NCBI GenBank assembly: GCA_040285825.1
Contig: JAUPSS010000003.1
Coordinates: 2,914,001 to 2,978,000 of the forward strand
Reading direction: 5' to 3'
Source of the DNA: Eukaryota sp. TZLM1-RC
Taxonomy: Eukaryota; Protista; Metamonada: BaSk clade
Length of the DNA stretch: 64,000 nt
Under the pieces are notes generated by a model. That model searched no databases. It was given only the letters and a program-made list of their open reading frames with translations, and was not told the DNA's origin. Position 1 is the stretch's first letter. Each line of letters opens with the position of its first letter. Positions 4,220-63,548 of the stretch are shown one piece after another. The position numbers and the translations under genes were made by a program.

Positions 4220-4519
4220 ATGCCTCTCCTATTAATCGAGTGTTGTCCAGAGTTCAAGGGGGTTTGTCAAGACCTCATTGCTCAACTACGAAGTCGATTT
4301 CCTGGTCGGATCTCTGTAAAATACAATGTTGATTATCTGGAAGATGATATTGATCCTCGCCCTTCTACCTTTGCTGTTATTTGGGAATTAACTAACGAAC
4401 TACTCTACCATTCTAATGAACGATGTGCATCATTTACAGAGATGGAAAATATTTTGAAACCTCTCATTGAGCCTCCAGAAAATCCCCTAAAACCAATGGC
4501 AGGAGGAGGGTGAGTTTAG
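4220..4519 (+). CDS. Small Rdx/SelW-like protein, predicted selenoprotein with penultimate Sec (...PMAGGG-U-V*)
   Basis: TGA at 4511-4513 is followed by GTT TAG and then a SECIS-like hairpin. 'LRSRFPGRISV...FAVIWE..ELLYHS' resembles the SelW/Rdx fold. A paralogue lies at 61492..61782. Confidence 0.75.
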
Positions 4520-4530
4520 GATGTTCCAAT

Positions 4531-4618
4531 GTAGGAAATGTGAACTCTGCTTTATGTGAAGTTGGGGTAGAAAACCTAAACGGCCTTCCCTGATTGATAA
4601 GCGTTCTCCATTTCCTAT
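4531..4618 (+). promoter_or_regulatory. SECIS element (GUGA core)
   Basis: Long helix I (TAGGAAATG..GAAC..GCTT / AAGC GTTC..CATTTCCTA), GTGA 4556-4559, AAAA 4571-4574, TGAT 4591-4594. Helix II is imperfect. Confidence 0.7.
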
Positions 4619-4663: not shown

Positions 4664-4972
4664 TTAGAAAACACCAGCACCTAATTGACGAATAATGTTG
4701 CCACTGTCACCAATCCAATTGTCAGTTTCGTCATCTTGTACTCTGAGGACGGGGACTGTATAGACACCACTTTGCTTATACAAGTAAACACGAAGTTCAT
4801 CAGATCTGCTCTGGGGAACATTGACGATATCATAATCAACGCCTTGTTCATCCAATGCAGTTCGCACTTTCGCACAAAAAGGACAAAATGGGAATTGGTA
4901 CAAGGTAATCTGCTTTGCAGAACAAGCTACAAACACTGAAAGAATTGAGACAATGAAGAGGAGAGAACGCAT
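4664..4972 (-). CDS. Glutaredoxin/GST-N-like protein with N-terminal signal peptide
   Basis: CPFC active site, TVP cis-Pro motif, IGDS motif and a hydrophobic leader MRSLLFIVSILSVFVACSA. Confidence 0.85.
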   Translation of the reverse strand: MRSLLFIVSILSVFVACSAKQITLYQFPFCPFCAKVRTALDEQGVDYDIVNVPQSRSDELRVYLYKQSGVYTVPVLRVQDDETDNWIGDSGNIIRQLGAGVF

Positions 4973-5211: not shown

Positions 5212-5282
5212 GCGTTAGTAGTACAGTGGTAGTATGCCTGCCTTCCAAGCAGATGACCCGGGTTCGATTCCCGGCTGACGCA
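5212..5282 (+). tRNA. tRNA-Gly (anticodon TCC)
   Basis: Acceptor stem GCGTTAG/CTGACGC, D arm GTACAGTGGTAGTAT, anticodon loop CT-TCC-AA, T arm CCGGG-TTCGATT-CCCGG. Confidence 0.95.
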
Positions 5283-18694: not shown

Positions 18695-21600
18695 GGAAAT
18701 TCCCTTGAGTACACGATCAATCTTCGCGCGGAATAATTACAAAAACTATCTACTACACGAATACTCAGGCCTTCCATTACCACTCATTCTGGCTTCAATA
18801 ATTGCAAACATATTCAGACAAGCCAGTTTATTTCTATTGAAAAGCTTTGTTGAGCCTTTGTTACTGAATTTACAACTCTCACTGTTACAAGCTAATAAAC
18901 CATGACATGTAGTAACTAAATTCTTTGCTCTTTTATATAATCTGGGATTTGTTACTCTCAAAAACGTAGCAACCTTTTCAAAACAAACAGACCATTTAGC
19001 TGAAGTGAAAGCTTCATTAATCATCAATTCTTCAAATCCATTTCTTTTCAGAAGTTGAATCCATCCAATACCTCGAGTAGGTCTCTGATGTTTTAAGTTT
19101 TTAGAGCCGTTACAACTTGAGCTGAAATACGTGATAATGACAAGTTGCGTTCAAAACGGGACTGTAAATACAGCTTCAGGCCACATGTAGTGTGTACTCG
19201 TAACTGTTGAAATTTTGAAACAGTTTCTTCAAGTTTCAATACAACACTTGCATGTTGAACGATTGAATTGACGATTGCACGATGGTTTTTTCCGACGGCA
19301 AACTGAACTTGTCTTGTGGCAACAATACAAAAAGTTTGAGACATAGTATACAATCATGGACCCCATATTGAACCAACTTTTGTCTAAGTGAAGCAATGGC
19401 TGAACAATGAACAGGTAAAATGATCGTAAATTCCTGATGAAGTTTGATTTTCATTTCACTAATCATTTTATAAGCCAGATTGCCTAAAATATGACCATAT
19501 TGAATTTTGATGAATTTTTTGGCAAATATTAGTGTGTCTAAAAGATAAAAGCCTTTTTTCCTGATGACAACTTCTCTCCATCTTGGTGAATGTTGATTGA
19601 GTGCATCAAGTGTTAAATCACCTGGAACAGTGGAAAAAGGTAAATCAAAATAGTTTAATCTAGTTTTTAAAACCTGTAAATCAAACTACATTAAATTGTG
19701 ATTAAGAAAACAATGGGGTTGATGATTACCAATAATGTTTAAAAACCTACAAAGCAAGGTTTTTTCATCACAGAGAATATTTCTGCCTGAATACCCAATC
19801 AATGTCAGGTAATCTGGTAATTTGAGGACTCATTCTCAATATAAGTGAATATTTACTCACCAAAAAAAATTATGGCGATCAAACCTTCCAATTACAATTG
19901 AAATGAAAAAGTATATTCTTGATCTGAAATCCACTCATCCATTTGCTCATCAGTTTTTTTTTCAAAAGATTTGATCCCTCTTCTCTCATTTTATCACTAC
20001 TTTTATCAAATTTGATGAAATGGTTCTCATTGTTTCCTTAAAGTTCACTATCCTGATAGGTTTGTGGTCATTGGTTTGAATTGAATCAAAAGATCAGGCT
20101 TGAAGCCACTACGACTTGGTTCAATTTTTTTTAACCATACTCGGTTTCAATTGTTTCTTTGTCAAAATCTTCCTGTTCTCGATGTTCAACATTGTATTCT
20201 CAACACAAATTTCGTGGTTCAGTGATTTTTGTTGATTTTTCCGCTGACGTTTTGATATTTGGTGGTACCAAAAGTCTCTTGTCTAATAATTTTTAATGGA
20301 AGAGTGGATTTACAATTGTATCTTCGCTTTTTGGGACCAGGATTTGCTTCAACATCTCCATCCTTTGTTAAATCAACAGAAAATGGGTTTTTTGATAGAT
20401 GTTGGAAGCTACCTTTTCAAAACAAACAGACCATTTAGCTGAAGTGAAAGCTTCATTAATCATCAATTCTTCAAATCCATTTCTTTTCAGAAGTTGAATC
20501 CATCCAATACCTCGAGTAGGTCTCTGATGTTTTAAGTTTTTAGAGCCGTTACAACTTGAGCTGAAATACGTGATAATGACAAGTTGCGTTCAAAACGGGA
20601 CTGTAAATACAGCTTCAGGCCACATGTAGTGTGTACTCGTAACTGTTGAAATTTTGAAACAGTTTCTTCAAGTTTCAATACAACACTTGCATGTTGAACG
20701 ATTGAATTGACGATTGCACGATGGTTTTTTCCGACGGCAAACTGAACTTGTCTTGTGGCAACAATACAAAAAGTTTGAGACATAGTATACAATCATGGAC
20801 CCCATATTGAACCAACTTTTGTCTAAGTGAAGCAATGGCTGAACAATGAACAGGTAAAATGATCGTAAATTCCTGATGAAGTTTGATTTTCATTTCACTA
20901 ATCATTTTATAAGCCAGATTGCCTAAAATATGACCATATTGAATTTTGATGAATTTTTTGGCAAATATTAGTGTGTCTAAAAGATAAAAGCCTTTTTTCC
21001 TGATGACAACTTCTCTCCATCTTGGTGAATGTTGATTGAGTGCATCAAGTGTTAAATCACCTGGAACAGTGGAAAAAGGTAAATCAAAATAGTTTAATCT
21101 AGTTTTTAAAACCTGTAAATCAAACTACATTAAATTGTGATTAAGAAAACAATGGGGTTGATGATTACCAATAATGTTTAAAAACCTACAAAGCAAGGTT
21201 TTTTCATCACAGAGAATATTTCTGCCTGAATACCCAATCAATGTCAGGTAATCTGGTAATTTGAGGACTCATTCTCAATATAAGTGAATATTTACTCACC
21301 AAAAAAATTATGGCGATCAAACCTTCCAATTACAATTGAAATGAAAAAGTATATTCTTGATCTGAAATCCACTCATCCATTTGCTCATCAGTTTTTTTTT
21401 CAAAAGATTTGATCCCTCTTCTCTCATTTTATCACTACTTTTATCAAATTTGATGAAATGGTTCTCATTGTTTCCTTAAAGTTCACTATCCTGATAGGTT
21501 TGTGGTCATTGGTTTGAATTGAATCAAAAGATCAGGCTTGAAGCCACTACGACTTGGTTCAATTTTTTTTAACCATACTCGGTTTCAATTGTTTCTTTGT

Positions 21601-23443
21601 CAAAATCTTCCTGTTCTCGATGTTCAACATTGTATTCTCAACACAAATTTCGTGGTTCAGTGATTTTTGTTGATTTTTCCGCTGACGTTTTGATATTTGG
21701 TGGTACCAAAAGTCTCTTGTCTAATAATTTTTAATGGAAGAGTGGATTTACAATTGTATCTTCGCTTTTTGGGACCAGGATTTGCTTCAACATCTCCATC
21801 CTTTGTTAAATCAACAGAAAATGGGTTTTTTTGATAGATGTTGGAAGCTACCTTTTCAAAACAAACAGACCATTTAGCTGAAGTGAAAGCTTCATTAATC
21901 ATCAATTCTTCAAATCCATTTCTTTTCAGAAGTTGAATCCATCCAATACCTCGAGTAGGTCTCTGATGTTTTAAGTTTTTAGAGCCGTTACAACTTGAGC
22001 TGAAATACGTGATAATGACAAGTTGCGTTCAAAACGGGACTGTAAATACAGCTTCAGGCCACATGTAGTGTGTACTCGTAACTGTTGAAATTTTGAAACA
22101 GTTTCTTCAAGTTTCAATACAACACTTGCATGTTGAACGATTGAATTGACGATTGCACGATGGTTTTTTCCGACGGCAAACTGAACTTGTCTTGTGGCAA
22201 CAATACAAAAAGTTTGAGACATAGTATACAATCATGGACCCCATATTGAACCAACTTTTGTCTAAGTGAAGCAATGGCTGAACAATGAACAGGTAAAATG
22301 ATCGTAAATTCCTGATGAAGTTTGATTTTCATTTCACTAATCATTTTTATAAGCCAGATTGCCTAAAATATGACCATATTGAATTTTGATGAATTTTTTT
22401 GGCAAATATTAGTGTGTCTAAAAGATAAAAGCCATTTTTCCTGATGACAACTTCTCTCCATCTTGGTGAATGTTGATTGAGTGCATCAAGTGTTAAATCA
22501 CCTGGAACAGTGGAAAAAGGTAAATCAAAATAGTTTAATCTAGTTTTTAAAACCTGTAAATCAAACTACATTAAATTGTGATTAAGAAAACAATGGGGTT
22601 GATGATTACCAATAATGTTTAAAAACCTACAAAGCAAGGTTTTTTCATCACAGAGAATATTTCTGCCTGAATACCCAATCAATGTCAGGTAATCTGGTAA
22701 TTTGAGGACTCATTCTCAATATAAGTGAATATTTACTCACCCACAAAAATTATGGCGATCAAACCTTCCAATTACAATTGAAATGAAAAAGTATATTCTT
22801 GATCTGAAATCCACTCATCCATTTGCTCATCAGTTTTTTTTTTCAAAAGATTTGATCCCTCTTCTCTCATTTTATCACTACTTTTATCAAATTTGATGAA
22901 ATGGTTCTCATTGTTTCCTTAAAGTTCATTATCCTGATAGGTTTGTGGTCATTGGTTTGAATTGAATCAAAAGATCAGGCTTGAAGCCACTACGACTTGG
23001 TTCAATTTTTTTTAACCATACTCGGTTTCAATTGTTTCTTTGTCAAAATCTTCCTGTTCTCGATGTTCAACATTGTATTCTCAACACAAATTTCGTGGTT
23101 CAGTGATTTTTGTTGATTTTTCCGCTGACGTTTTGATATTTGGTGGTACCAAAAGTCTCTTGTCTAATAATTTTTAATGGAAGAGTGGATTTACAATTGT
23201 ATCTTCGCTTTTTGGGACCAGGATTTGCTTCAACATCTCCATCCTTTGTTAAATCAACAGAAAATGGGTTTTTTGATAGATGTTGGAAGCTACTGGATTA
23301 GAAACATAAATCATTAACATAAGCATCAAACTCAACATCGTCAAAATAACAACAATACAAAACCAAACACAAACAAGAAAACATCCCGTATCTAAAGTGA
23401 TTAAAACCATGGCTGATTCAACAGCACCCATATCATGACTCAC
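18695..23443 (-). mobile_element. Internally deleted, triplicated Fanzor element with a 2A-like motif in its 5' coding part
   Basis: The 3' end encodes 'EPTRGIGW..INEAFTSAK..CHGLLAC..FNRNKLACLNM..RPEY' and a conserved non-coding tail shared with 31389..31450. DVEANPGP occurs at 23237-23214, 21794-21771 and 20356-20333. Confidence 0.7.
18972..23293. repeat. Three near-identical tandem copies, period about 1439 bp
   Basis: Units start at 18972, 20411 and 21850. Identical ORFs recur at 1439-nt spacing, and differences are mostly homopolymer lengths. Confidence 0.95.
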
Positions 23444-30000: not shown

Positions 30001-31305
30001 CTACATTAAAGACATAAAATCATCTACAAAACTGAAAGAATTTGATTGTTTTTGATTAGAACTGTCAGAACAACTCAAAAGGTCAAAATCATCAATCAAA
30101 TTTGATTGTTTTTGATCACTCACTGGAGTTTCTGAATCCACTTCTTCTTGTTCATTTCCAGTTTCGAAAAAGAAACCCCCATCTTCTTTCTGCCCCGAGT
30201 CTTCAACGGTCAAACCTCCAAACAAATCATTCTGAGCTGATGACGTTTGAATAACTGGGCTAACAATAGCCAAAAAGCGAGCAACATTGGTCTTTATCTG
30301 CTTAATTTCTTTTCCTAAACGCTCAAATTGATCTCTTTTTGAACTATCCTCAAGAATTTCAGCGACTAATGGATAATAATCCGAGTTATTGGTCAACATT
30401 TCTAAAAGACCAAACACAAAAGCTCTTTTAAACCAGATAATATTTGAATCATGGACATAATGCTCAATTTGTGAAACCACTGCAAAAGAATCAAAAACAA
30501 AAGACTTTTTAAGAAACTTTGAAAATTCTTGACTGGACGGGATAAATCTCATCATCGACGCATTACTGGCGATTGTATCAATCAACCTCTCGATCGCCTT
30601 CCTTTCGTGATTAACTTCTTCCTCGACATCTTGTTCCTGGACAGTGACACGTGGAGTGTCGTCAAAGTCTTCAAAAGTCCTGGAAGATGACGTTTCTGTA
30701 TTTGACTCATCTTGATTTCGATTATAATTGACAGATTCCAACTTTCCTATTCTGGAAGGTGGCGCTTTCTCTGTTCGATCTCCAAAAGTGTTGATCAGGT
30801 TCCTTGCTTTGTCCCGGGCTTTATCCATGAACGATACATCCTGCTTTGGAGAAGGAGCCCTTGTTGACCCTATGCCAGCCGAAGTAACCGTTGGGGTAGT
30901 GGTGGAGGCAGGTGGAGGTTGGTGTTCGATCAGAATTGTCAAAACCTCTGAAGCGAGTTTCCGAACTTCAGTAAGACGAGAAGACTGTTCTGCTTTGAGT
31001 TGGATGATGTTACCAGCAGCTTCAGACATGGGGATGTTTTGTTTAATGATGAGGGAGAGTTGGCGGGAGCGAAACGCACGGGTTAGGGAAGCAGAACCAT
31101 TTGAGAGGAGGTATTTGATGGTTTGGAGCGCCTTGATCTTGACACTGAGAGACTTGTCTTTGATACGTTTGAGAAGGAGATTTTCTATTTGAAGACAATT
31201 ATTGGTAGATGTGTGGGAAAGCTTGGAAAGTTGAGCAAGGGTTGCTCCAGATGGAGGTGCAAAGTCATCAGCAGTGACTTCATTTATGAGAGAACGAACG
31301 CTCAT
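30001..31305 (-). CDS. Tepsin/ENTHD2-like AP-4 accessory protein
   Basis: ENTH-like 'LINEVTADDFAPPSG..LLKRIKDKSLSVKIKALQTIKYL', plus 'DLFGGL' and 'SFSFV' tail motifs. First ATG at 31305. Confidence 0.75.
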   Translation of the reverse strand: MSVRSLINEVTADDFAPPSGATLAQLSKLSHTSTNNCLQIENLLLKRIKDKSLSVKIKALQTIKYLLSNGSASLTRAFRSRQLSLIIKQNIPMSEAAGNIIQLKAEQSSRLTEVRKLASEVLTILIEHQPPPASTTTPTVTSAGIGSTRAPSPKQDVSFMDKARDKARNLINTFGDRTEKAPPSRIGKLESVNYNRNQDESNTETSSSRTFEDFDDTPRVTVQEQDVEEEVNHERKAIERLIDTIASNASMMRFIPSSQEFSKFLKKSFVFDSFAVVSQIEHYVHDSNIIWFKRAFVFGLLEMLTNNSDYYPLVAEILEDSSKRDQFERLGKEIKQIKTNVARFLAIVSPVIQTSSAQNDLFGGLTVEDSGQKEDGGFFFETGNEQEEVDSETPVSDQKQSNLIDDFDLLSCSDSSNQKQSNSFSFVDDFMSLM

Positions 31306-31863: not shown

Positions 31864-33010
31864 GTGGTTATTATTTGTATTTTTGGAAATCCTTCTGAAT
31901 TCCAAGATATGACCCTTGCTGCTGCTGATCCAGGTAAATCTGGTCTACTCTATTTTTCTGCCAATTTAGCCACTCGAATGACTCATTCAAAAAATCCTGA
32001 GAGAGATAAATATGTTCATTTCAGGTACACTCAAAATCAACGAAGATTTAAGTCGAAAAGTTCCAAATTCAAAAGAATAAGAGACAGCATACGGAATGAC
32101 ACTCTTATCACAATAAGTAACTCTACTGGTAGAGTGATTGATCTATCCAATTATGAACCATCTGAAGAGCAACAACAAAGGATGGATTTAAACAGCAGTA
32201 TAATTAGTCAAATGACTGAAAGAACAATTAGTTTATTAAGAAAAAAAGTACCTCAAGAAATCAATATTCCCCACGAAATTGATTACTCATTCAATTTGAG
32301 AAATAATGATCACACGACTAAATCTGTAGCAGAATGAGAAGCAACTTTATCCCAATTCAATTCCAAAAGCTGCAGGTTTGATAGATTTATGGAGTATATT
32401 AAACAAAAGAATTTTGTGAATAGTATTGTTGGTCAAGTCTATCATCAAAAAATATTGAGGAAACGAAGATGGTCGGCTGAGATCAATCGCACAAGATCTG
32501 AGACAAGAATGATTCAGAGATTCAAATCAGTAATTGGTGATCCAGGTCAAGTAGTGATTGACATTGGAGACTGGGAACAACGAAAACACTTGAAATTCAA
32601 AGAACCAACCTAAGGAAAAGGTTTGAGAATTCTATTTAAAAAGGCTGATTATAAGGTCCTTTTGAATGATGAATTTCGAAACCAGTTACTGTTGATTCAA
32701 CTGTAAGAAAGAGGAGAAAACAGTTGAAACATTACAATGGTGCAGAAATCCTAGGCCATGGAAGAGGCATGAGATGTCTATTCGTCACGGGCTGAGCTTG
32801 TGTAAATCATGCGAAAGTTTGTGGAATAGAGATCGAAATGCTTCGCTGAATATGTTGGCAATGATGGAAGCACAAGTAAAGGGTGGAGATAGACCAGAAT
32901 ACCTACAGCGAGTCAAGGCTGATGAAGGTTCAAAGAAAAAGGTATAAGGAGGAAATCTTCCACTTCTCAAAAACTTAGTCCCTCTGTATCGGTGTAAAAA
33001 GGACTCATTT
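31864..33010 (+). pseudogene. Fanzor1-type nuclease pseudogene with 3' hairpins (candidate omegaRNA)
   Basis: RuvC-I 'AAADPGK', 'IGDW..KFKEPT*GKG', RuvC-II 'NDEFRTS', 'RHGLSLCKSC' and RuvC-III 'WNRDRNASLN'. Internal stops; final stop at 32945-32947. Confidence 0.88.
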
Positions 33011-37215: not shown

Positions 37216-38737
37216 ATGACATACGATTACGATCTCATAGTAATAGGTGGTGGTAGTGGTGGCCTTGCTGCTGCTAGAGCTGCTGCTGGTTTCAAGAAAA
37301 AAGTCCTTTTGCTTGACTACGTTCACCCTTCACCAAAATCAACAACTTGGGGTATCGGTGGCACATGTGTTAATGTTGGCTGCATTCCCAAACGTCTGAT
37401 GCACGATGCTGCTGGAATTGCTGAAACCATCCGTGACTCAAATGCACATGGTTTTGAAAACACTTCAGATCCTACCGTCAACTGGACTACTCTCGTTAAT
37501 AACATTGATTCCTACATTCGCAGACTCAATCGAGCATACATCACCGAATTAAAGGTACAGTACTTTGCACAAGACTAACAACCAGTGGAATGACTACGTC
37601 GATTACCTTAATGCCGAAGGTTCTTTCCAGGGGCCCCATGAAGTACTAGTCAAGTATGCCGATCCAACCAAAGAAGCCGAAGTCTTTTCAGGAGAGCACA
37701 TTGTCATTGCTGTAGGTTCTCGTCCCTTCTATCCAGATATTCCTGGTGCTGAACTTGCCATAACCTCTGATGATATTTTTTGGTCAAAAACACCTCCCGG
37801 AAAAACATGTGTTATTGGAGCTAGTTACATTGCCCTAGAAAGTGCTGGTTTTCTCACTGGTCTTGGATTCGATGTCTCTGTTATGGTAAGAAGCATAATT
37901 CTTCGTGGCTTTGATCAACAGATTGCCGGAATGATTGGAGCTTATATGGAAAACCACGGTGTTAAATTCCTTAAGGGTATGTCACCTACAAAGCTGGAAG
38001 AAGTAGAAGATGGCAAGATCCGCGTTCACTATCAATCTGGTGAAGAGTCTCACTCTGAGATCTTTGATACTGTTATGTTTGCAACTGGAAGAACTCCGAA
38101 CACATGGAGACTCAACCTTCAGTCTGCCGGTGTACGTTTCCATAAAGGAAGTGGTAAGATTATGGTCAACAAGGAAACGACCAATGTCAAACACATTCAT
38201 GCTGTGGGAGATGTAGTTAAGGGAGGGCTTGAGTTGACCCCTGTGGCCATCCAAGCAGCCAAACTTTTGATCAATAGACTCTATGGTAATGAGACCAGGG
38301 GTTTTAATTACCGTATTGTGCCTACAACAGTGTTTACCCCTCTTGAATATGGTTCTTGTGGTATTTCTGAAGATGATGCTGTTGCTCAATATGGAGAGGA
38401 AGCCCTCAATATTTATCATCAAAACTTCCAGCCGTTAGAATGGTCTCTTCCTGGAAAGAGTTCCTCTGCTTGCTATGTATGTCTTTATTCATTCTCACCA
38501 TAGGCCAAACTCATATGTCTAAAGGAAGAAAACGACCGTGTAATTGGTTTCCATTATCTTGGTCCATCAGCTGCTGAGGTCACTCAAGGATACGCTGTTG
38601 CTATGAGAATGGGTGCAACGAAGCTTGACTTTGATTGGACTCCTGGTATTCATCCTTCTAATTCAGAGACATTTGTTGGCTTGTCCATTACCAAAAGTAG
38701 TGGGGAATCTGCCAAGAAGGGAAATTGCTGAGGTTAG
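37216..38737 (+). CDS. TXNRD: High-Mr thioredoxin reductase, selenoprotein (C-terminal GNC-U-G); introns 37555..37585 and 38477..38503
   Basis: GGGSGG, CVNVGC and GIHP..SE motifs. The spliced frame ends GGA AAT TGC TGA GGT TAG (TGA at 38729-38731), with a SECIS downstream. Confidence 0.95.
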
Positions 38738-38776: not shown

Positions 38777-38847
38777 AAACCAGGTCTAAGTGATGATTGC
38801 TTTCTCAATACTCTTGAAGTAGGAAAGTGATTTGATGAACTTGGTTT
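38777..38847 (+). promoter_or_regulatory. SECIS element, type II (GUGA core)
   Basis: Helix I AAACCAGG/CTTGGTTT, GTGA 38790-38793, 11-bp helix II GATTGCTTTCT/GGAAAGTGATT, AA 38807-38808, mini-stem TACT/AGTA, TGAT 38833-38836. Confidence 0.9.
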
Positions 38848-41326
38848 GGCTTCGCTTTTTTTATTGATAAAAGAATTGTTATTGTTTGTTCAATCAACTA
38901 TAACACAAAATTTCAACAATTACAGTCATCTGCGACCAGTCTTGTAGTCAATTGAGTAGACAGTATTTCAAGAATTCCTTAACTTTTTAATTTTAATTTC
39001 CAATTGTTTATTATTTGGTAGAAAGCCTGTTCAACTTGTTATTGGTGATCTTTATAATCCTTGAATTCTTCTCTTGATTTGTGCAGAATTTATAACGAAT
39101 TAAGAACAATGTTTTTGGCTAATTTACTTGACATTGTTTTTTTCTTAGAAAGCATATTTTTTGTAGCACCGAATAAGTTGGTCTTGATTTTCAGAATTTT
39201 TTTTATTTATTTATCGAATTCTCCAGTTTCCACAATAGTTGATGGTATTGAAATTCAAGCCAAATTATATTCAATTGATGCTATTCGTCATTTGGGTTCG
39301 TTTTTAGGAAATAATGATGAAATTACCAAAAAATTGTTTGAAAAGTTGAACTCAATTTCGGACAAAATTGACCGAATGATGAATTTAGATATAAAAAAAC
39401 ACATCAAATTTACCATTATAAGACTGTGTTTTAGTTCCAATTTTAATCATATATTTCGATCTACAAATCCTCTCGTCACTAGACCTTTGGCTCAGAAGTT
39501 TAATGAATCACGTGAAAAAGTTCTGTCACAATTACTGTGATGTAAAATGTTCCAAATTCCAGACCATGCTTACCTTAGTCCACATTATGGTGGTTTAGGG
39601 TGGACGAAGGCTTCTATTCTTACCTCGTGTGCTTTTGTTGGTGGATGCAGAAATGCAATCTTTGAGTTTTCCGAAAGATTTACAGATTGGGAAGATTTAT
39701 TGATGGCAACGCAAACTTCCACTGTTTTTGCATTAAATGAAGAAATTTCAAAAATTGATGCAGAAAAATGGGGTCGATGCTTTCCCCAATAATTCAATGG
39801 CAATATTCCAGAAAAGAATGTTTTAAATTTAAAATACACTCTTCGAACATTACAGAGACGATTGACTGGAATGTATGAAAATGATCTTTATAATAATATA
39901 TGCAGCTCGTCTGTTTTAAATCAAGATCTTCACTCATTGTTATTGGAAAAGGGTGTTTGTGAAAACAAGTCGTCAGATTCTTCACTTTTTGTAACCATTG
40001 TACCACGAAGATTTGGATTGTGTGCCACTAATGAAGCATTTGTAACAAACATGAAATTATATTTGAATATTCTCATTAATCAATTATTATCAAAAGAAAA
40101 ATGTATTTGTTCGAATTCACCTCAACTCACTTTGCGCCATGCTCTGAATTGTTCTAAATTGATAACTTATCGTACTTCATTACATGATGCTGTTAGAGAC
40201 ACTGTTTTCAATATGGCACAAACTGCAAGAATATCGTGTATCAAAGAGCCTCTGCTGATGGAAACACTTTCTCTGAATAATTTTGGTTCTGATGATAGAG
40301 ATGATGTATATTGTGATTGGATTGAGAACTCTGAAGCTATTGTTGACTTTGTCTCATGTAATGTTGCAAATGATACTTTGGTTCACAGAAGAAAACTTAA
40401 TCCTGTGAGTGCTCTTGATTTCAAAGCAAAAGAGAAACATAGAAAATATGATAAAGCTATTGAAGAGGCTAATGCTGATAGAAATACACAGTTAGTTTTT
40501 ATTGCTTTCCCATTTACGATAAACAGAAGACTATCAGTTGAAGCAGAAACTTTTTTGAATGACTTCCAAAAAAATGGTGCAAGAAAAAACAATGAAAAGA
40601 TTTGATATTGTTTTATGGCGTTCTCGGATACAATTTGCCATTATTAATAGATTACCTCGGTTCTTCAATCGAATAAGAGAAGCTTTAGCTAGACAGCAAG
40701 CAGATCAAGATTTTGTAGAGGAAATCCTGGTTCAATGATATTCGTCCCATCAGTTATGAATTAATTTATTTAAATGTGCATGTTCAATAAATATATTTAT
40801 TTAAACGTTTTTTATTATTAAATGAGCTAAATACTACGACAATTCAAAAATGCTTTATCCAACTACTCAATGCTGCTTTACACAAAATCGAGGATTTAGT
40901 GAAACCAATTCCACCCAAATCAGCAGAACAAAATAAATGACTTCAAATGAAAGATTCATTTACTTCTAATAAAGAAGAACAAAATTCGACCCGAAGTTTG
41001 TTGAAAGATTTGCAAAAAGCAAGAGATACCGAGGGGTTTGAGTGATTGAGTGATGCTTGAAGAAAGTAACATTTCAAATGAAAACGGACTTTCTGGTATT
41101 ACTATCGATCATGTAAAAGCCGCAATTATTTCTTCAGAGGATTGTCTTGGTTCATTAACCAAATTTTTCAACAAAATATTGACTGGTCAACTCAGATATC
41201 CAGAAGAATTAAGAAGTTCTCGTTTGACTGCACTTGTCAAAAATTCAAAAATGGATGTTCGACCTATTGCAGTCTCTGAGAGCTTACAAAATATTTTTCT
41301 GCGTCTTGCTTGAGCAGGTTCAATAA

Positions 41327-41467: not shown

Positions 41468-44083
41468 ATAAGAAAGCAAAAAGGATTTTATTACCCTTTC
41501 AATATGGAATTAATACCACTGATGGAGTCTCTTCAGTGATATTTGCTACTGATCTATTATTTCGCCAAAATGAATCCAATGTTTGTATGTCATTGGATTT
41601 TAGTAATGGATTCAATTCACTCAGTCGTCGCAGTATCCATGGTGCTTTATTGCAATATATGCCTGAATTAATGCCGTATTTTCAATCAACATATAGCACA
41701 TATTCTAATTTACATTTTGGTAATTCCATTTTGAGTTCATCAAGTGGTGTAAAGCAAGGAGATCCGTTAGGACCTCTTTTGTTTTGTTTGGCCATTCATC
41801 CTATTTTAATGCAAATTCAAGAGATGTTTCCTTCGCTAAAAATGACTGCATATATGGATGATGTTGTGCTTATTGGTGATTTAAGTATTGTGAAACACAA
41901 AACTGTATGTTTTAAAGAATTATTTACCAAAATTTGTCTCCGACTTAATTTACTTAAATGTGTTTTGTTATCAAATTCTCCAGTTTTCACAATAGTTGAT
42001 GGTATTGAAATTCAAGCCAAATTATATTCAATTGATGCTATTCGTCATTTGGGTTCGTTTTTAGGAAATAATGATGAAATTACCAAAAATTGTTTGAAAA
42101 GTTGAACTCAATTTCCGACAAAATTGACCGAATGATGAATTTAGATATAAAAAAACACATCAAATTTACCATTATAAGACTGTGTTTTAGTTCCAATTTT
42201 AATCATATATTTCGATCTACAAATCCTCTCGTCACTAGACCTTTGGCTCAGAAGTTTAATGAATCACGTGAAAAAGTTCTGTCACAATTACTGTGATGTA
42301 AAATGTTCCAAATTCCAGACCATGCTTACCTTAGTCCACATTATGGTGGTTTAGGGTGGACGAAGGCTTCTATTCTTACCTCGTGTGCTTTTTGATGGTG
42401 GATGCAGAAATGCAATCTTTGAGTTTTCCGAAAGATTTACAGATTGGGAAGATTTATTGATGGCAACGCAAAGTTCCACTGTTTTTGCATTAAATGGAGA
42501 AATTTCAAAAATTGATGCAGAAAAATGGGGTCGATGCTTTCCCCAATCATTCAATGGCAATATTCCAGAAAAGAATGTTTTAAATTTGAAGTACACCCTT
42601 CGAACATTACAGAAACGACTGACTGGAATGTATGAAAATGATCTTTATAATAATATATGAAGCTCGGCTGTTTTAAATCAAGATCTTCACTCATTGTTAT
42701 TGGAAAAGGGTGTTTGTGAAAGTAAGTCGTCAGATTCTTCACTTTTTGTAACCATTGTACCACGAAGATTTGGATTGTGTGCCACTAATGAAGCATTTGT
42801 AACAAACATGAAATTATATTTGAATATTCTCATTAATCAATTATTATCAAAAGAAAAATGTATTTGTTCGAATTCACCTCAACTCACTTTGCACCATGCT
42901 CTGAATTGCTCTAAATTGATAACTTATCGTTCTTCATTACATGATGCTGTTAGATACACTGTTTTCAATATGGCACAAACTGCAAGAATATCGTGTATCA
43001 AAGAGCCTCTGCTGAAGGAAACACTGTCATTGAATAATTTTGGTTCTGATGATAGAGATGATGTATACTGTGATTGGATTGAGAACTCTGAAGCTATTGT
43101 TGACTTTGTCTCATGTAATGTTGCAAATGATACTTTGGTTCACAGAAGAAAACTTAATCCTGTGAGTGCTCTTGATTTCAAAGCAAAAGAGAAACATAGA
43201 AAATATGATAAAGCTATTGAAGAGGCTAATGCTGATAGAAATACACAGTTAGTTTTTATTGCTTTCCCATTTACGATAAACAGAAGACTATCAGTTGAAG
43301 CAGAAACTTTTTTGAATGACTTCCAAAAAAATGGTGCAAGAAAAAACAATGAAAAGATTTGATATTGTTTTATGGCGTTCTCGGATTCAATTTGCCATTA
43401 TTAATAGATTACCTCGGTTCTTCAATCGAATAAGAGAAGCTTTAGCTAGACAGCAAGCAGATCAAGATTTTGTAGAGGAAATCCTGGTTCAATGATATTC
43501 GTCCCATCAGTTATGAATTAATTTATTTAAATGTGCATGTTCAATAAATATATTTATTTAAACGTTTTTTATTATTAAATGAGCTAAATACTACGACAAT
43601 TCAAAAATGCTTTATCCAACTACTCAATGCTGCTTTACACAAAATCGAGGATTTAGTGAAACCAATTCCACCCAAATCAGCAGAACAAAATAAATGACTT
43701 CAAATGAAAGATTCATTTACTTCTAATAAAGAAGAACAAAATTCGACCCGAAGTTTGTTGAAAGATTTGCAAAAAGCAAGAGATACCGAGGGGTTTGAGT
43801 GATTGAGTGATGCTTGAAGAAAGTAACATTTCAAATGAAAACGGACTTTCTGGTATTACTATCGATCATGTAAAAGCCGCAATTATTTCTTCAGAGGATT
43901 GTCTTGGTTCATTAACCAAATTTTTCAACAAAATATTGACTGGTCAACTCAGATATCCAGAAGAATTAAGAAGTTCTCGTTTGACTGCACTTGTCAAAAA
44001 TTCAAAAATGGATGTTCGACCTATTGCAGTCTCTGAGAGCTTACAAAATATTTTTCTGCGTCTTGCTTGAGCAGGTTCAATAA

Positions 44084-44915
44084 TGTTGTTGTTGAACTCA
44101 TATTGAATTAGTAGGTTTCTTTGTATTTCGACTGATGACGTGATACTCATTTATGAATCAGTTTTATTAATAAACTTAGATTTCTCTCTCTCCCCTTCGT
44201 GTGTTCATCTGCCTAACGGCATCAATAATTATTGGCCCTTCTTATTTCAGATGACTGTTCCCTCTGTTAACCTGACGTCTCTTTCTTCCATGAAAGTTAA
44301 AAGTGTTCTTCTGTTCCTATAGGAGTGAAAGATTTATTCTTCGGTGACTCCTAAGAAAGAGCTTGTTCCAGCAAGACTCTTGGTCGATTCTTTTCTGTTA
44401 GAGTCCCTATCTCTCCAGAAATCCGACGTCTCATCCAGTGACGATGTTCTTCTCAGACATCTACAATCTGTCGTATCGTTCGTCACGTACGAAGATTTTA
44501 GTCTGGCTATGTCAGAACTGAAGCTTGATGTCCGTATTGGTGACGTCCGAGAACGCATGTCCTGTTACCTGCGACGTTTCCTCCAGGTAAAGAGTAGGGC
44601 TTCCGGACTGAAGTTGCCAGACATAGCTTTTCTGAACCGATTTGCCAGAGGAATTCTTCCCGTAGGTCTCCAACGTTCTCATACCAACGATGCACCGGAG
44701 AATTAAACAAACCCCATATCTTCCCTCTATTGAGCCAGTACTGTATTTGTCCTCAGAAAAGTGGGAAAAAGTAGTGTTGTTGTTGAACTCATATTGAATT
44801 AGTAGGTTTCTTTGTATTTCGACTGATGACGTGATACTCATTTATGAATCAGTTTTATTAATAAACTTAGATTTCTCTCTCTCCCCTTCGTGTGTTCATC
44901 TGCCTAACGGCATCA
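44084..44915 (+). mobile_element. Miniature non-autonomous LTR element (LTR - gag-like remnant - PPT - LTR)
   Basis: Two 141-bp LTRs. The internal frame 44251..44706 has two early stops. The purine tract AGAAAAGTGGGAAAAAGTAG precedes the 3' LTR; ATAA TSD. Confidence 0.85.
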
Positions 44916-47003
44916 ATAAGAAAGCAAAAAGGATTTTATTACCCTTTCAATATGGAATTAATACCACTGATGGAGTCTCTTCAGTGATATTTGCTACTGA
45001 TCTATTATTTCGCCAAAATGAATCCAATGTTTGTATGTCATTGGATTTTAGTAATGGATTCAATTCACTCAGTCGTCGCAGTATCCATGGTGCTTTATTG
45101 CAATATATGCCTGAATTAATGCCGTATTTTCAATCAACATATAGCACATATTCTAATTTACATTTTGGTAATTCCATTTTGAGTTCATCAAGTGGTGTAA
45201 AGCAAGGAGATCCGTTAGGACCTCTTTTGTTTTGTTTGGCCATTCATCCTATTTTAATGCAAATTCAAGAGATGTTTCCTTCGCTAAAAATGATTGCATA
45301 TATGGATGATGTTGTGCTTATTGGTGATTTAAGTATTGTGAAACACAAAACTGTATGTTTTAAAGAATTATTTACCAAAATTTGTCTCCGACTTAATTTA
45401 CTTAAATGTGTTTTGTTATCAAATTCTCCAGTTTTCACAATAGTTGATGGTATTGAAATTCAAGCCAAATTATATTCAATTGATGCTATTCGTCATTTGG
45501 GTTCGTTTTTAGGAAATAATGATGAAATTACCAAAAAATTGTTTGAAAAGTTGAACTCAATTTCCGACAAAATTGACCGAATGATGAATTTAGATATAAA
45601 AAAACACATCAAATTTACCATTATAAGACTGTGTTTTAGTTCCAATTTTAATCATATATTTCGATCTACAAATCCTCTCGTCACTAGACCTTTGGCTCAG
45701 AAGTTTAATGAATCACGTGAAAAAGTTCTGTCACAATTACTGTGATGTAAAATGTTCCAAATTCCAGACCATGCTTACCTTAGTCCACATTATGGTGGTT
45801 TAGGGTGGACGAAGGCTTCTATTCTTACCTCGTGTGCTTTTGATGGTGGATGCAGAAATGCAATCTTTGAGTTTTCCGAAAGATTTACAGATTGGGAAGA
45901 TTTATTGATGGCAACGCAAAGTTCCACTGTTTTTGCATTAAATGGAGAAATTTCAAAAATTGATGCAGAAAAATGGGGTCGATGCTTTCCCCAATCATTC
46001 AATGGCAATATTCCAGAAAAGAATGTTTTAAATTTGAAGTACACCCTTCGAACATTACAGAAACGACTGACTGGAATGTATGAAAATGATCTTTATAATA
46101 ATATATGAAGCTCGGCTGTTTTAAATCAAGATCTTCACTCATTGTTATTGGAAAAGGGTGTTTGTGAAAGTAAGTCATCAGACTCTTCACTTTTTGTAAC
46201 CATTGTACCACGAAGATTTGGATTGTGTGCCACTAATGAAGCATTTGTAACAAAAATGAGATTATATTTGAATATCCCCATTAATCAATTATTATCAAAA
46301 GAAAAATGTATTTGTTCGAATTCACCTCAACTCACTTTGCACCATGCTCTGAATTGCTCTAAATTGATAACTTATCGTTCTTCATTACATGATGCTGTTA
46401 GATACACTGTTTTCAGTATCTCACAAACTGCAAGAATATCGTGTATCAAAGAGCCTCTGCTGAAGGAAACACTTTCTCTGAATAATTTTGGTTCTGATGA
46501 TAGAGGTGATGTATACTGTGATTGGATTGATAACTCTGAAGCTATTGTTGACTTTGTGTCATGTAATGTTGCAAATGATACTTTGGTTCACAGAAGAAAA
46601 CTTAATCCTGTGACTGCTCTTGATTTTAAAGCAAAAGAGAGACATAGAAAAATTGAAGAGGCTAATGCCGATAGAAATACACAGCTGGTTTTTATTGCTT
46701 TCACATTTTCGATAAATGGAAGATTATCAGGTGAAGCAGAAACTTTTTTGAATGACTTCCAAAAAATGGTGCAAGAAAAAACAATGAAAAGATTTGATAT
46801 TTTTTATGGCGTTCACGGATTCAATTTGCCATTATTAATAGAGTACCTCGGTTTTTCAATCGAATAAGAGAAGCTTTAGCTAGACAGCAAGCAGATCAAG
46901 ATTTTGTAGAGGAAATCTTGGTTCAATCACAGTCGTCCCATTAGTTATGAGTTAATTTAATTAAGTGTGCAAATTCAATAAATATACCGTTGAGTATAAA
47001 AAA

Positions 47004-59378: not shown

Positions 59379-61262
59379 ATGTCCCGCAGACCTATGACAT
59401 CAGCTGGCAGAGCTTTAGCAGAAGCTAGAGCTTCTGTTGGTCGTGTACCTTCACTTGCTGCAGGAGGTTTTCGCCCTCTTCCACCTACTGAACGACCTGT
59501 TACACCAGCATCTGATTCCCAATTCCCAGGCGTTTACACCCCTCGTCCTGGTAGCAGTATAGGTCCCCGCCCTTCTTCAAAAGCAACATCCCGTCGCCTC
59601 GCTCCTCTCTCTGCATCCACTCCTTCTCAACCCAAATCCCAACCACCATCTCGTCTTGATTCCGCCAGCTCTACCACATCCAGTACTTCTGACACCAAAC
59701 TTTCTTACTCTGATAAACTCTCTATCCTTTTCTCCAATCTTTCTTCCTCGCTCACTCTTCCTCCTGACATAGAACCATCTGATGTCCAGTCATTTAGACC
59801 CCAATGGGAAGCCGCACAGAAAGCAGTTGAATCTATAAAGAAGTACTCTGGCTCTTCTAAAACCTCTCACCTCTTCTTCTCTCTTCATTTTTGCTCAGTG
59901 CTCAACACAGTCACCTTCAAACTACTCAACATCCTGGTGAACCTAAGCCATGACCAAGAATTAATAGAAGTTTGTTTACCTCTTTTGGAAACTTTGCTAG
60001 ATGACGATGAAGAAATTAGTGAGAAGAGGCTATCATTGATTAGGTTGTCAAGTTGTCTGACTGACATGTCTGATGTCGTTAGTTTTGATCTCTTTTCTCA
60101 AATGACTGAAAATTTAACCTCAATACTAAGAGCAATGTCAAATGATCCAGACGCTTGTTCGACTGAAATTAGAGATTATTCGGTTTATGGATGCTTGGGA
60201 GTGCTGATGAGAGTCTTTGTTAGTAGTAGAAAAGTAGTATACAACATATCGAGAATTGTTTCAAAACTCTCGCTGACGTCATCCGCTCAAAATGATATGT
60301 CGAATTCTCCCCAATTTTTGAGCTCAATACCTAAAATTTTACCGCAGTATGAGGGGGACAATGCTATTCTTGTTCGTTTTGCCTTTGCGCTTGGTAATTT
60401 GGCTGCTTCCTATGATGAACCAAGAGTATCTTTTGCATTGACTTGTTCTGGAATTCCTTTACTAATGTCCATATTAATAAAACGAACTCATCATTTATTA
60501 GAAACAATCAGCAACAGTTCCATTGATGACGTCATCACAGACGATGCTGATGTGATGGTTAAATTGATTAGATTGGTTGCCAATTTGTCCATCAATCCAG
60601 AAGTTGGAGCTTTTATTGCCTGCAAAGAAGAAATTCAAATGTTGGAATGGATTATTTGTTCAAATTTAGAATTAAATTCAGAACTATTACACAATACCAT
60701 AGCCTGTACTACTAATCTGAGCTATTATTCAACACAAAGGAATGTTTTACTAAACACCTGTGGGGTTGAGATTTCTCAAAAATTGATTGATATTTTGATT
60801 GATTCAAATGCTTCTCGTGATTTAAAGTTAGAATCAGCACGAGCTCTCGGAAACCTATCACGTGATTCAGAGGTCAGAAACCTGTTGACTGGTCATAATT
60901 GGAGCTCAAAAACAGGAGTTTCTGTCCTCACCTCATTTTTAGCTTCTGATTCTGATCTATCTGCTGCTTGTTGTGGAGTTTTGATGAACATTGCTGCTGA
61001 TCCTGATCATAGAACTTGTTTGGTAGTGTCAGGAACTATTCCTTTATTGATTGAAGTCGTGGAAAGTCAAGAGGAAGCTGCTGTGTCTGCTGCGTTAAAA
61101 ACTCTGTTCAATCACGCACTCCACAATCAAAATCCTTTTGATGATGGTCAAGTTTCCCTTTTGAAAGGGGTCTGTAAGGGATTGGTTGCCAGTAGTGATG
61201 ATGTTGACCTTTTGGATGTTGCGAATAGACTTGTTGAGTTTTTGAGTGTTCGTAGCGAATAG
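59379..61262 (+). CDS. Armadillo repeat protein, ARMC2-like
   Basis: 'VRFAFALGNL', 'KLIRLVANLSINPEVG', 'NLSYY', 'ARALGNLSR' and 'CGVLMN'; disordered RP-rich N-terminus. Confidence 0.8.
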   Translation: MSRRPMTSAGRALAEARASVGRVPSLAAGGFRPLPPTERPVTPASDSQFPGVYTPRPGSSIGPRPSSKATSRRLAPLSASTPSQPKSQPPSRLDSASSTTSSTSDTKLSYSDKLSILFSNLSSSLTLPPDIEPSDVQSFRPQWEAAQKAVESIKKYSGSSKTSHLFFSLHFCSVLNTVTFKLLNILVNLSHDQELIEVCLPLLETLLDDDEEISEKRLSLIRLSSCLTDMSDVVSFDLFSQMTENLTSILRAMSNDPDACSTEIRDYSVYGCLGVLMRVFVSSRKVVYNISRIVSKLSLTSSAQNDMSNSPQFLSSIPKILPQYEGDNAILVRFAFALGNLAASYDEPRVSFALTCSGIPLLMSILIKRTHHLLETISNSSIDDVITDDADVMVKLIRLVANLSINPEVGAFIACKEEIQMLEWIICSNLELNSELLHNTIACTTNLSYYSTQRNVLLNTCGVEISQKLIDILIDSNASRDLKLESARALGNLSRDSEVRNLLTGHNWSSKTGVSVLTSFLASDSDLSAACCGVLMNIAADPDHRTCLVVSGTIPLLIEVVESQEEAAVSAALKTLFNHALHNQNPFDDGQVSLLKGVCKGLVASSDDVDLLDVANRLVEFLSVRSE

Positions 61263-61400: not shown

Positions 61401-61474
61401 ACTAAATCTCCGCATCATCATAGAAAGATCCCAAAGGGTTTGTCTTAAATGAATCACATAGCTTGAGATTCAGT
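61401..61474 (-). promoter_or_regulatory. SECIS element, type II (GUGA core)
   Basis: Minus strand reads ACTGAATCTC-aagctat-GTGA-TTCATTTAAGAC-AAA-CCCTTTGGG-ATCTTTCTATGA-TGAT-gcg-GAGATTTAGT, with a 10-bp helix I. Confidence 0.85.
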
Positions 61475-61491
61475 AAGTATAAAAACTTCAC

Positions 61492-61782
61492 CTAGGCTCA
61501 GGCCTTACAACTCTTCGTAGGGTCTTTAGGAGGTTCAATGATCGGCTTTAATATAGACTCCATTTCCTCAACGGTTGCCACTCTGTTTGTCGATTCAAAG
61601 AGAAGCTCGTTAGTCATTTCCCATACTACAGAGAATACATCTGGTCTTGGTTCTATATCATCTTCTAGGTAATCAACATTGTACTTGACAGCAATTCTAC
61701 CGGGAAATCGACGTCTCAAAGAGGAAAGGAGGGACAAGCAGTCGTCCTTCAAATAGTTGCAAACTTCTATTAAGAGAAGCAT
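61492..61782 (-). CDS. Small Rdx/SelW-like protein, predicted selenoprotein with C-terminal CxxU (...SCKA-U-A*)
   Basis: TGA (61500-61498) GCC TAG followed by a SECIS. Paralogue of 4220..4519 (shared RFPGRI.VKYNVDYLEDDI.PRP). Confidence 0.8.
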
Positions 61783-61810: not shown

Positions 61811-63548
61811 CTAATACTCAACATTCTTTCCCACACTCACTGATCGTTGCAGTAGCATTGGTCTACAATTATCATGAATATGACAGTACGTAATCCTGTA
61901 CATGTTTAGAGCACTGTTAACATCCCTATCCCAATAGACGCCACATTCACTGTTTTGACAGTGTAGCAGTCCATGGCATGGGACTAGTTTTGACACCACC
62001 TTTTTTATATTCAAATTTTGTTGAAGATCTTGAATTTTGTTTTCAAGAATTTGAATAGAATCAGCATCATAATCCGGTTTTTTAACCACTCGCAAGTCAT
62101 TCTTTAACCTCTGCTTCTTACATTTGAATCTTTTATAGGCATTTGGATCTTTGACCTTTACATCACATTTGGTATTTCCTTCGCGATGATTTTCAACACA
62201 AGCAGCACATCTCTTACTGGTACGATATTCGGCTACTAATTATACTCTTATACCAGCTTTTCTCAGAATTCTTCTTAGCCCAACACCTCTGATTGTGCTG
62301 GCTTTACCTTTTCGGTTTGTCTTGGCGTCCCAATCACCAAGGCCAATTACAATATTGTGAGCCTCAGCTTTTAACTCTGCTTTTAATCGGTTAACCCAGG
62401 CAGCCTCACTCTTTTGTTTATTTATATATTTGTATAGAGTGTGGCGCCTGAACAAAGGGTCTTGATAAATGGGACAGAGCAATTGATCGTGGAGTAGTTT
62501 CATGTTAATATACTCCTTGAATTCCTGCAGACTCAAAGATTTTTGTGGAATTTTCTGATAATTTATTAGAAATTTCTTGTACTGACACTACGGTTTGCGT
62601 AGATGGTAAATTAAATTCTTCGTGAAATCGGGAAGAGATTTAGTGATTTCCTCTTCACCGTTGATTCTTTTCATAACTGCAGTTTTGAAAGAGTTTTCAC
62701 TGCTCTCAATCCTAAAAATGATCGAGTTCAAGTAGTTTGTTTCCGTTTCTCTGAACTTCTCTGTTTGAAGTCCAAAGTTTCGTCTACCATCAGTGTAAGA
62801 ATTAATAATTAGTTTGTCTCTTTTTTCATTCATTTTTTTTCTTTTTTCATTAAATGTTTTTTTGGGTTTTTTGTTTTTTTTTGTTTTTTTTTCATTTTTT
62901 TCCTTGTTTTCTTCACCACGCTTATCATTATTTTTGAATTTTTCACTTTTTTTCCTTTCTGCTTCAGTCATGGATTCCTTTGGGCTCAATATGACTGATC
63001 TCAGCAGAATATGATTGACTGATTTGGTAAGGAATCAAACTGATACCAGTTTGGTATCATATTCGTTAGGGTCTATTCCAGCAATGACTTTACCTTCTGA
63101 TGAATTCAGTTCATCTTCACAAAGATCATGAATCCTTTTGTTTGTCTCTGCATTTTTTCAAATCATTGCGCTTGTGTTGAACAGAAACTCCACAGCCATC
63201 TGTCAGAATACTTCCGTCAAAAACGTAACCATGAGTATTTTTGGCCATGGCATTATGCTGCATGTTGAGTACCCTTTTCCAAGTTGTGAGACTTTTTTCA
63301 TCAACGTCAATCGTTTGATCGTCACTTTCTGGAGTTTCATCAAACTCTGTGATGGGGAGTACGGTGGATTCATCAGACAGTTCTCTTGATTGATTAATAG
63401 TAATTTGCATACTTCTGGTTTCAACCCGCAAATATGCTGGAGAAAGGGATGTTCTGATAGAAAAAACTTTGTAAATGAATAAATGATTATGTTTTTTCCC
63501 TTCAGCAATTTCGATTAATTCCTCAGAAATACGACTGAGGTCCGCCAT
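61811..63548 (-). pseudogene. Degraded Fanzor1-type nuclease
   Basis: 'FDGSILTDG.GVSV', RuvC-I 'IAGIDPN' (about 63070-63090), 'GDW', RuvC-II 'AEYRTSKRCAAC', 'CHGLLHC..C' and RuvC-III 'WDRDVNSALN'. Several stops and frameshifts. Confidence 0.88.

Follow-up and report, generated by a model that had tools for sequence, protein, structure and literature searches.

Does the TGA at which a short minus-strand open reading frame (ORF) of the window, the whole 64-kb stretch of DNA analysed here, appears to end stop translation, or is it read as selenocysteine (Sec)? An earlier note had proposed the latter and had placed this gene, copy B in what follows, in a new selenoprotein family. On the sequence evidence, copy B is quite probably a functional eukaryotic selenoprotein gene with a penultimate Sec. 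Its family is present in two sister assemblies, and the encoded domain probably has a compact, thioredoxin-like fold nearest to that of Rdx/SelW. To our knowledge, new eukaryotic selenoprotein families are rare, most having been found before 2015.

The reading frame of copy B

The copy B ORF and its translation run on the minus strand from an ATG at 61782-61780 to Ala94 at 61503-61501, followed by TGA (61500-61498), GCC (61497-61495) and TAG (61494-61492). Read through the TGA, the protein has 96 residues and ends in ..S-C-K-A-U-A*, so that the codons and coordinates bear out the proposal of a TGA 'stop' followed by one codon and TAG, giving C-K-A-U-A*. The N-terminal stretch reads L-I-E-V-C-N-Y, with the single Cys that had been reported as IEVCNY. 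An in-frame TAA lies immediately 5' of the ATG, fixing the N-terminus; an upstream extension would therefore need an intron. The features of the coding region are as follows.

61492..61782, minus strand: proposed copy B coding sequence with Sec, comprising 94 codons, UGA (Sec95), GCC (Ala96) and TAG (ORF; upstream in-frame TAA)
61498..61500, minus strand: in-frame UGA, proposed as the penultimate Sec95 (the same TGA, one codon and stop occur in the homologues copy A and P0003)
61759..61761, minus strand: Cys8 codon, the sole Cys invariant in the three homologues, placed after the first predicted strand (three-sequence alignment)
61507..61509, minus strand: Cys92 codon, the Cys of a C-K-A-U motif specific to copy B (missing from copy A and P0003)

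The database entries of copy B and of its two homologues all end at the TGA (3/3), so annotation has truncated them, just as had been predicted for standard annotation. Copy B is very probably a selenoprotein gene cut short in this way. The protein searches described below used the sequence up to the TGA.

Homologues in the window and in a sister assembly

Searched by tblastn with the copy B ORF, the window yields a paralogue, copy A, at 4220-4510 with 62-64% identity.

4220..4519, plus strand: copy A, 97 codons followed by TGA (4511-4513), GTT and TAG, ending ..GGG-U-V* (tblastn; reading of the DNA)

When a profile of the two copies was run exhaustively with HMMER against 1.84 billion representative proteins, it added a third member, KAL0248427.1 (P0003 hereafter), a 'hypothetical protein' of Eukaryota sp. 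GEM-RC1 (E 4e-24); three further matches were set aside as repeat proteins. The DNA of P0003 reads ..G-M-S-K, TGA, TGT, TAA, giving S-K-U-C*. It lies in assembly GCA_040285855.1 (contig JAUFOQ010000002.1), and the window in GCA_040285825.1 (JAUPSS010000003.1). The two accessions are close neighbours and the two contigs nearly equal in length (3,723,599 and 3,724,615). Even so, exact-sequence look-ups of four proteins (94, 95, 150 and 409 residues) found each in just one of the two assemblies, which suggests that these represent different genomes. Since each tested protein occurs in one assembly only, P0003 probably belongs to a related genome, as a homologue, and does not add a third copy to the genome of the window. 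The P0003 locus shares no synteny with copy A or copy B.

The earlier note had looked to tBLASTn of related genomes for a conserved penultimate TGA or Cys; copy A carries TGA, one codon and a stop, and P0003, recovered by HMMER, does likewise. Beyond these, a word-index protein search with copy B returns only itself, a three-sequence profile run against an index of 5.8 billion proteins returns the three members only, and two metagenome scans with N-terminal and C-terminal patterns yield no relatives. No homologue with Cys at the Sec position occurs in the databases searched, and all three members have TGA. As far as these searches reach, the family consists of three members in two assemblies, with no detectable sequence relatives beyond these. 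The claim that it matches no described family stands by sequence against Pfam, NCBIfam, PDB, HMMER and the large-index profile search.

A GUGA-type SECIS element downstream of the UGA

The copy B hairpin starts 17 nt 3' of the TAG, at 61474, and ends at 61401. Its overall anatomy is that of a type II SECIS with a GUGA core replacing AUGA: helix I, an (A/G)UGA..GA quartet, helix II and an unpaired AA 10-13 nt from the core are all present. The 5' loop is AAGCUAUG, ending in G, and the 3' loop is GCG.

61401..61474, minus strand: copy B SECIS, type II, GUGA core (anatomy, energy scan, shuffles, covariation with P0003)
61474-61465 / 61410-61401, minus strand: helix I, 10 bp
61456-61453 / 61417-61414, minus strand: quartet, UGAU/UGAU
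61452-61443 / 61428-61418, minus strand: helix II, 4+4 bp around a 2x3 internal loop
61442-61439, minus strand: CAAA bulge, its AAA starting 12 nt past the core
61438-61436 / 61432-61430, minus strand: mini-stem, 3 bp CCC/GGG, with a UUU loop

A SECIS had been expected to begin 'about 20 nt later' and had been called 'textbook' and 'clean'. The hairpin is where it was placed and has type II anatomy, but the adjectives go too far: the core is GUGA and not AUGA, helix II contains a loop, unconstrained folding of the 3' UTR or of the whole hairpin gives a z of only -0.9, and Rfam models report no SECIS at E<=10 in 58-64 kb of the window or in the three 3' UTRs. The Rfam blank is itself uninformative, because a thioredoxin reductase (TR) control and copy A were missed likewise.

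A strict in-register SECIS pattern overlooked copy B and P0003 because of the internal loop or bulge, and was replaced by an energy scan, in which each [AG]UGA-N10-13-AA...GA candidate on both strands is scored by upper-stem and helix-I energy. Among the 453 candidates of the window, first place goes to the hairpin of the TR gene (-24.4), third place to copy B (-20.2) and fifth place to copy A (-17.6). Ranks 2 and 4 are antisense to coding sequence, and rank 2 is without helix II. At the P0003 locus (L001) the P0003 hairpin comes first at -18.5, the next candidate scoring -10.8. When the window was shuffled 40 times with its dinucleotides preserved, candidates appeared at a rate of 0.225 per 128 kb for scores <= -20 and of 0.6 for scores <= -17.5; the chance of such a hairpin starting in a given 100 nt of a given strand is thus ~2e-4 at the level of copy B (range ~2e-4 to 5e-4). 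The copy B hairpin is beyond chance.

The TR gene is the window's own positive control for Sec use. The quartet of its SECIS, UGAU/UGAU, is preceded by G. The corresponding features of TR and copy A are listed here.

38504..38737, plus strand: TR last exon, ending ..GNC, TGA (38729-38731), GGT, TAG, that is GNC-U-G* (match to PDB TGR/TrxR C-termini, E 8e-24)
38777..38847, plus strand: TR SECIS, GUGA, with helix I of 9 bp, helix II of 11 bp, a CAA bulge and a 4-bp mini-stem (energy scan, anatomy)
4548..4603, plus strand: copy A SECIS core, with an outer helix extending to 4533-4617 (pattern, energy scan, covariance model)
4557-4560 / 4595-4598, plus strand: copy A SECIS quartet, UGAA/UGAU
plus strand: copy A SECIS helix II, 9/10 pairs, with AAAA at 4571-4574

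The distance from the UGA to the SECIS core is 44 nt in copy B, 46 in copy A, 43 in P0003 and 62 in TR. The minimum spacing reported in mammals is 51-111 nt, and the 44 nt of copy B count against it in this respect. The three family genes and TR together define an organism-specific SECIS, in which the core is GUGA, the CAAA bulge comes at 12 nt and the Sec codon lies only 43-62 nt upstream, a pattern that can be used to re-annotate the rest of the genome. GUGA_AA elements occur in green algae and in the sponge Amphimedon, where they are organism-wide and not family-wide (PMC3473315). All four elements examined here are likewise GUGA; they differ from the green-algal and sponge elements in their host, an unclassified eukaryote, and in their very short spacing.

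Conservation and selection

TGA, one codon and a stop are common to all three members (3/3), and so is an AUGUGA-N11-12-AAA...UGAU hairpin. The tails before the Sec cannot be aligned (SCKA-U-A in copy B, AGGG-U-V, preceded by PM, in copy A, GMSK-U-C in P0003). Pairwise comparison of the coding sequences gives a pS of 0.83-0.92, at saturation, and a pN of 0.26-0.40, so the ORFs are under purifying selection. Because synonymous sites are saturated, shared features other than amino acids are kept by selection and are not leftover identity. Three features are kept in this way: a TGA in place of TAA or TAG, exactly one more codon, and a hairpin at a fixed distance.

The hairpins of copy B and P0003 match part for part. 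When they are aligned, 88.6% of cells fall in standard pairs and five pairs have changed on both sides, against 34-53% pairing and 0-1 both-side changes in slid controls, a comparison mildly favoured by the structure having been derived from the same sequences. A covariance model of these two hairpins places that of copy A third among its matches in the window (12.9 bits, E 1.2), with the register as expected, and aligns that of TR correctly but weakly (8.2 bits, local search only). The match at rank 2 (30065-30135) is a false positive, located within an ORF of 440 residues. The model is too sequence-specific, and the TR hairpin resisted alignment to the other three by MAFFT.

The protein domain and its Sec-bearing tail

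As read from the three sequences, the architecture is an N-terminal domain of ~80 residues, a Pro-rich linker and a short, variable tail with the penultimate Sec; residues 1-80 are predicted to be structured. Invariant in all three members are Cys8 (in L-I-E-V-C), F-P-G-R/K-I, D-P-R-P and the linker E-P-P-x-x-P-x-K, and Cys8 is the only invariant cysteine of the alignment. The CxxC/CxxU site of the Rdx type is reduced to its first Cys (C-N-Y-L, C-P-E-F and C-P-S-L), with Leu or Phe filling the usual position of the Sec or second Cys. Cysteines of the tail vary: copy B has Cys92 in its CxxU, P0003 a U-C pair and copy A none. The CxxU that the earlier note had taken as the mark of the family is found in copy B only, the homologues ending GGG-U-V and S-K-U-C, and since the copy A tail is without Cys, CxxU cannot define the family. 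Its constants, in the sequences at hand, are Cys8 and the penultimate Sec.

The ESM Atlas look-ups suggest that the domain is likely to have an Rdx/thioredoxin-like fold. In the ESM Atlas, the models of the two window copies have pLDDT values of 0.71 and 0.65. The three best named feature matches of copy A are all Rdx clusters (0.86-0.87, below the tool's line of 0.9, sharing 184-188 of 256 features), and its best structural match is a SelT/SelW/SelH cluster (TM 0.68/0.69, residues 1-87). Copy B matches Rdx clusters at 0.87, again under the 0.9 line, and thioredoxins at TM ~0.6. AlphaFold2 gives poor models (pLDDT 52.8 from the single sequence, 56.3 from the three-sequence alignment) whose topologies conflict, and Foldseek with the first, poor model returns nothing from the PDB at E<=0.001. 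Neither Pfam, Rdx (PF10262) included, nor NCBIfam has a family that matches any of the three members, even at E<=10. A profile search of the PDB gives chance-level matches only; matches to caspase-7 p10 (E 0.15-1.4) are weak and are taken as chance. Of the Rdx/SelW-like fold proposed earlier, and of the comparison with Rdx by structure prediction that was to examine it, what survives is the set of weak Atlas matches to Rdx and thioredoxin; the Pfam blank and the poor AlphaFold models speak against it.

Relation to known selenoproteins

With the Rdx proteins (SelW, SelT, SelH, SelV, Rdx12 and MIEN1; PF10262) the family shares its small size, a predicted beginning of strand and helix in which a Cys directly follows the strand, and the top rank of Rdx clusters in the Atlas feature and structure look-ups, under the 0.9 line as these are. 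Its 'R-F-P-G-R-I' stretch before the second strand presumably also resembles Rdx. It differs from them in the absence of a Pfam match at E<=10, in having C-x-x-[L/F] at the usual site and a penultimate Sec on a Pro-rich tail, and in having no HMMER-level relatives among the 1.84 billion proteins. The Sec centre may reasonably be thought to have moved from the CxxU site to the tail. That the protein descends from an Rdx fold, with the catalytic Sec having left CxxU for a C-terminal swinging arm that pairs with the retained Cys8, is a tentative reading.

It is also possible, if somewhat doubtful, that copy B encodes a selenoprotein whose domain is not related to Rdx and whose Cys8 is not the Sec partner, the tail acting alone, as in SelK and SelS, or with its own Cys. 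This would fit the lack of any Pfam, NCBIfam or PDB sequence match to Rdx, the poor AlphaFold models with no fold match, the Cys within 1-3 residues of Sec in copy B and P0003, and a copy A tail, P-M-A-G-G-G-U-V, that looks SelK-like. Set against it are the position of Cys8, the sole invariant Cys, which is placed like the active Cys of Rdx and thioredoxin folds, the copy A tail without Cys, the Atlas look-ups of both paralogues, which point to Rdx or thioredoxin, and the lack of a transmembrane helix of the SelK/SelS kind.

The resemblance to SelK and SelS lies in a Sec 1-3 residues from the C-terminus (penultimate in 3/3 members here) on a flexible, Gly/Pro-rich tail, and we take the P-M-A-G-G-G-U of copy A to be similar to the SelK tail. 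The family nevertheless differs from both in having, by inspection, no hydrophobic segment of the length of their N-terminal transmembrane helix, a predicted folded, thioredoxin-like domain in place of a long disordered region, and no sequence similarity. A Cys174-Sec188 selenenylsulfide is proposed for SelS in one account of that protein (PMC3628699), and the proposed pairing of the tail Sec with Cys8 would be similar.

The C-terminal arm of animal-type thioredoxin reductase (GCUG) is believed to move back and forth, meeting a buried Cys centre at one end and the substrate at the other. It too has a penultimate Sec, one residue and a stop, and the organism's own TR (GNC-U-G*) has the same SECIS type as the family. 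The family differs in being a 96-residue single domain without a flavin or NADPH domain, and in the variable Cys near its Sec (CxxU, none or UC). No described family with an Rdx-like domain and a C-terminal or penultimate Sec was found in the literature, a search that cannot be exhaustive. Most likely these genes form a new selenoprotein family of three members, possibly with a relocated Sec, and copy B works like a standard eukaryotic selenoprotein gene.

Proposed mechanism and significance

The predicted copy B mRNA has UGA as codon 95, then one codon and UAG, with a GUGA type II SECIS on its 3' side whose core lies 44 nt past the UGA. By its anatomy and by established selenoprotein biology, this SECIS would recruit SBP2, EFSec and Sec-tRNA, so that UGA95 is read as Sec. 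The product would be a protein of 96 residues ending in C-K-A-U-A. Its flexible tail may bring Sec95 to Cys8 to form a selenenylsulfide, so that the redox centre would be split, with the tail as its swinging arm; this pairing of Cys8 with Sec95 is speculative. In copy B, Cys92 could serve Sec95 as a second, local CxxU partner.

If the link to Rdx holds, the family shows that a redox centre based on Sec can be divided and transferred to a tail, a point of interest for the evolution of Sec positions, and the protein would be a very small system in which to study selenoenzymes with a swinging arm. If the proposed pairing with Cys8 is correct as well, it would reproduce the mobile-arm chemistry of thioredoxin reductase in one domain of 96 residues, and would exemplify the natural relocation of an active site in a selenoprotein.

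Expression, termination and decoding

The family could be real and copy B decaying or silent, a TnpB/Fanzor-like element having replaced its promoter. A TnpB/Fanzor-like ORF on the same strand, recognised by a weak Cas12f1-like_TNB match (E 0.006), ends 28 nt 5' of the copy B ATG and leaves almost no room for a promoter. Yet no part of the gene is broken, be it ORF, UGA, second stop or SECIS; pN/pS in the comparison with copy A indicates constraint; and the genome is compact, the intergenic gaps around copy A and around P0003 measuring ~50-200 nt. A silent copy B is accordingly judged improbable.

Still harder to sustain is the reading of the TGA as an ordinary stop, with a 94-residue product ending SCKA and a hairpin that arose by chance or is a 3' UTR structure unrelated to Sec. 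TGA is indeed a common terminator, ending 15/34 long ORF segments in the window, and the Rfam blank and the z of -0.9 would agree with an ordinary stop. However, three synonymously saturated homologues keep the TGA, one codon, a stop and a hairpin with K-turn and AAA at the same distance, the same type of hairpin follows a bona fide TR gene of the window, and the shuffles put the chance of such a hairpin here at ~2e-4.

UGA is not a general sense codon here, because TGA ends so many long ORF segments of the window and two long ORFs, of 627 and 440 residues, have no TGA inside; together with the SECIS-type hairpin common to copy B and TR, this makes it most unlikely that UGA is read as Cys, or as both Cys and Sec as in Euplotes, to give a CxxC tail. 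Within the 64-kb window there is no tRNA-Sec, the only tRNA being tRNA-Gly (TCC) at 5212-5282 (plus strand).

Neighbouring features of the window

Several further observations concern the surroundings of these genes. A 27-nt GT..AG intron (38477-38503, plus strand) lies just 5' of the last TR exon, and a SUMO-like gene of GEM-RC1 (L003:4086-4382), with 99 codons and an 89-residue product, suggests an intron of similarly tiny size, so that these genomes may typically have very short introns. The TnpB/Fanzor-type candidate upstream of copy B spans 61811-62989 (minus strand), perhaps to ~63596, with three ORFs in one frame (62989-62591, 62536-62243 and 62095-61814); the last carries the weak Cas12f1-like TNB / zinc-ribbon match (E 0.006). 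These look like one gene split by tiny introns or stops. Weak protein-level kin of these ORFs lie at 32786-32911 (plus strand) and 18767-18934 (minus strand).

On the other side, convergent with copy B, a single-exon gene at 59379-61262 (plus strand) encodes an armadillo-repeat protein of 627 residues with weak ARMC5 and PUL matches. Its stop is 139 nt from the end of the copy B SECIS, so the 3' UTRs must be very short or overlapping. Copy A faces a convergent glutaredoxin gene (4664-4972, minus strand; Pfam Glutaredoxin, E 1.3e-15), the 3' end of which is ~50 nt from the end of the copy A SECIS; this may be a functional neighbour or a coincidence.

Two repeated regions also emerged. Between 39058 and 45743 (plus strand), pairs of ORFs recur with identical stop contexts (39058-39538 / 44798-45743 and 39793-40603 / 42661-43360), and equal-score covariance-model matches at 42478 and 45926 mark this region as a repeated element of a few kb. 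Three equal-score model matches at 20005, 21443 and 22886, within 20005-22949 (plus strand) and 1438 and 1443 nt apart, suggest a tandem repeat of ~1.44 kb.
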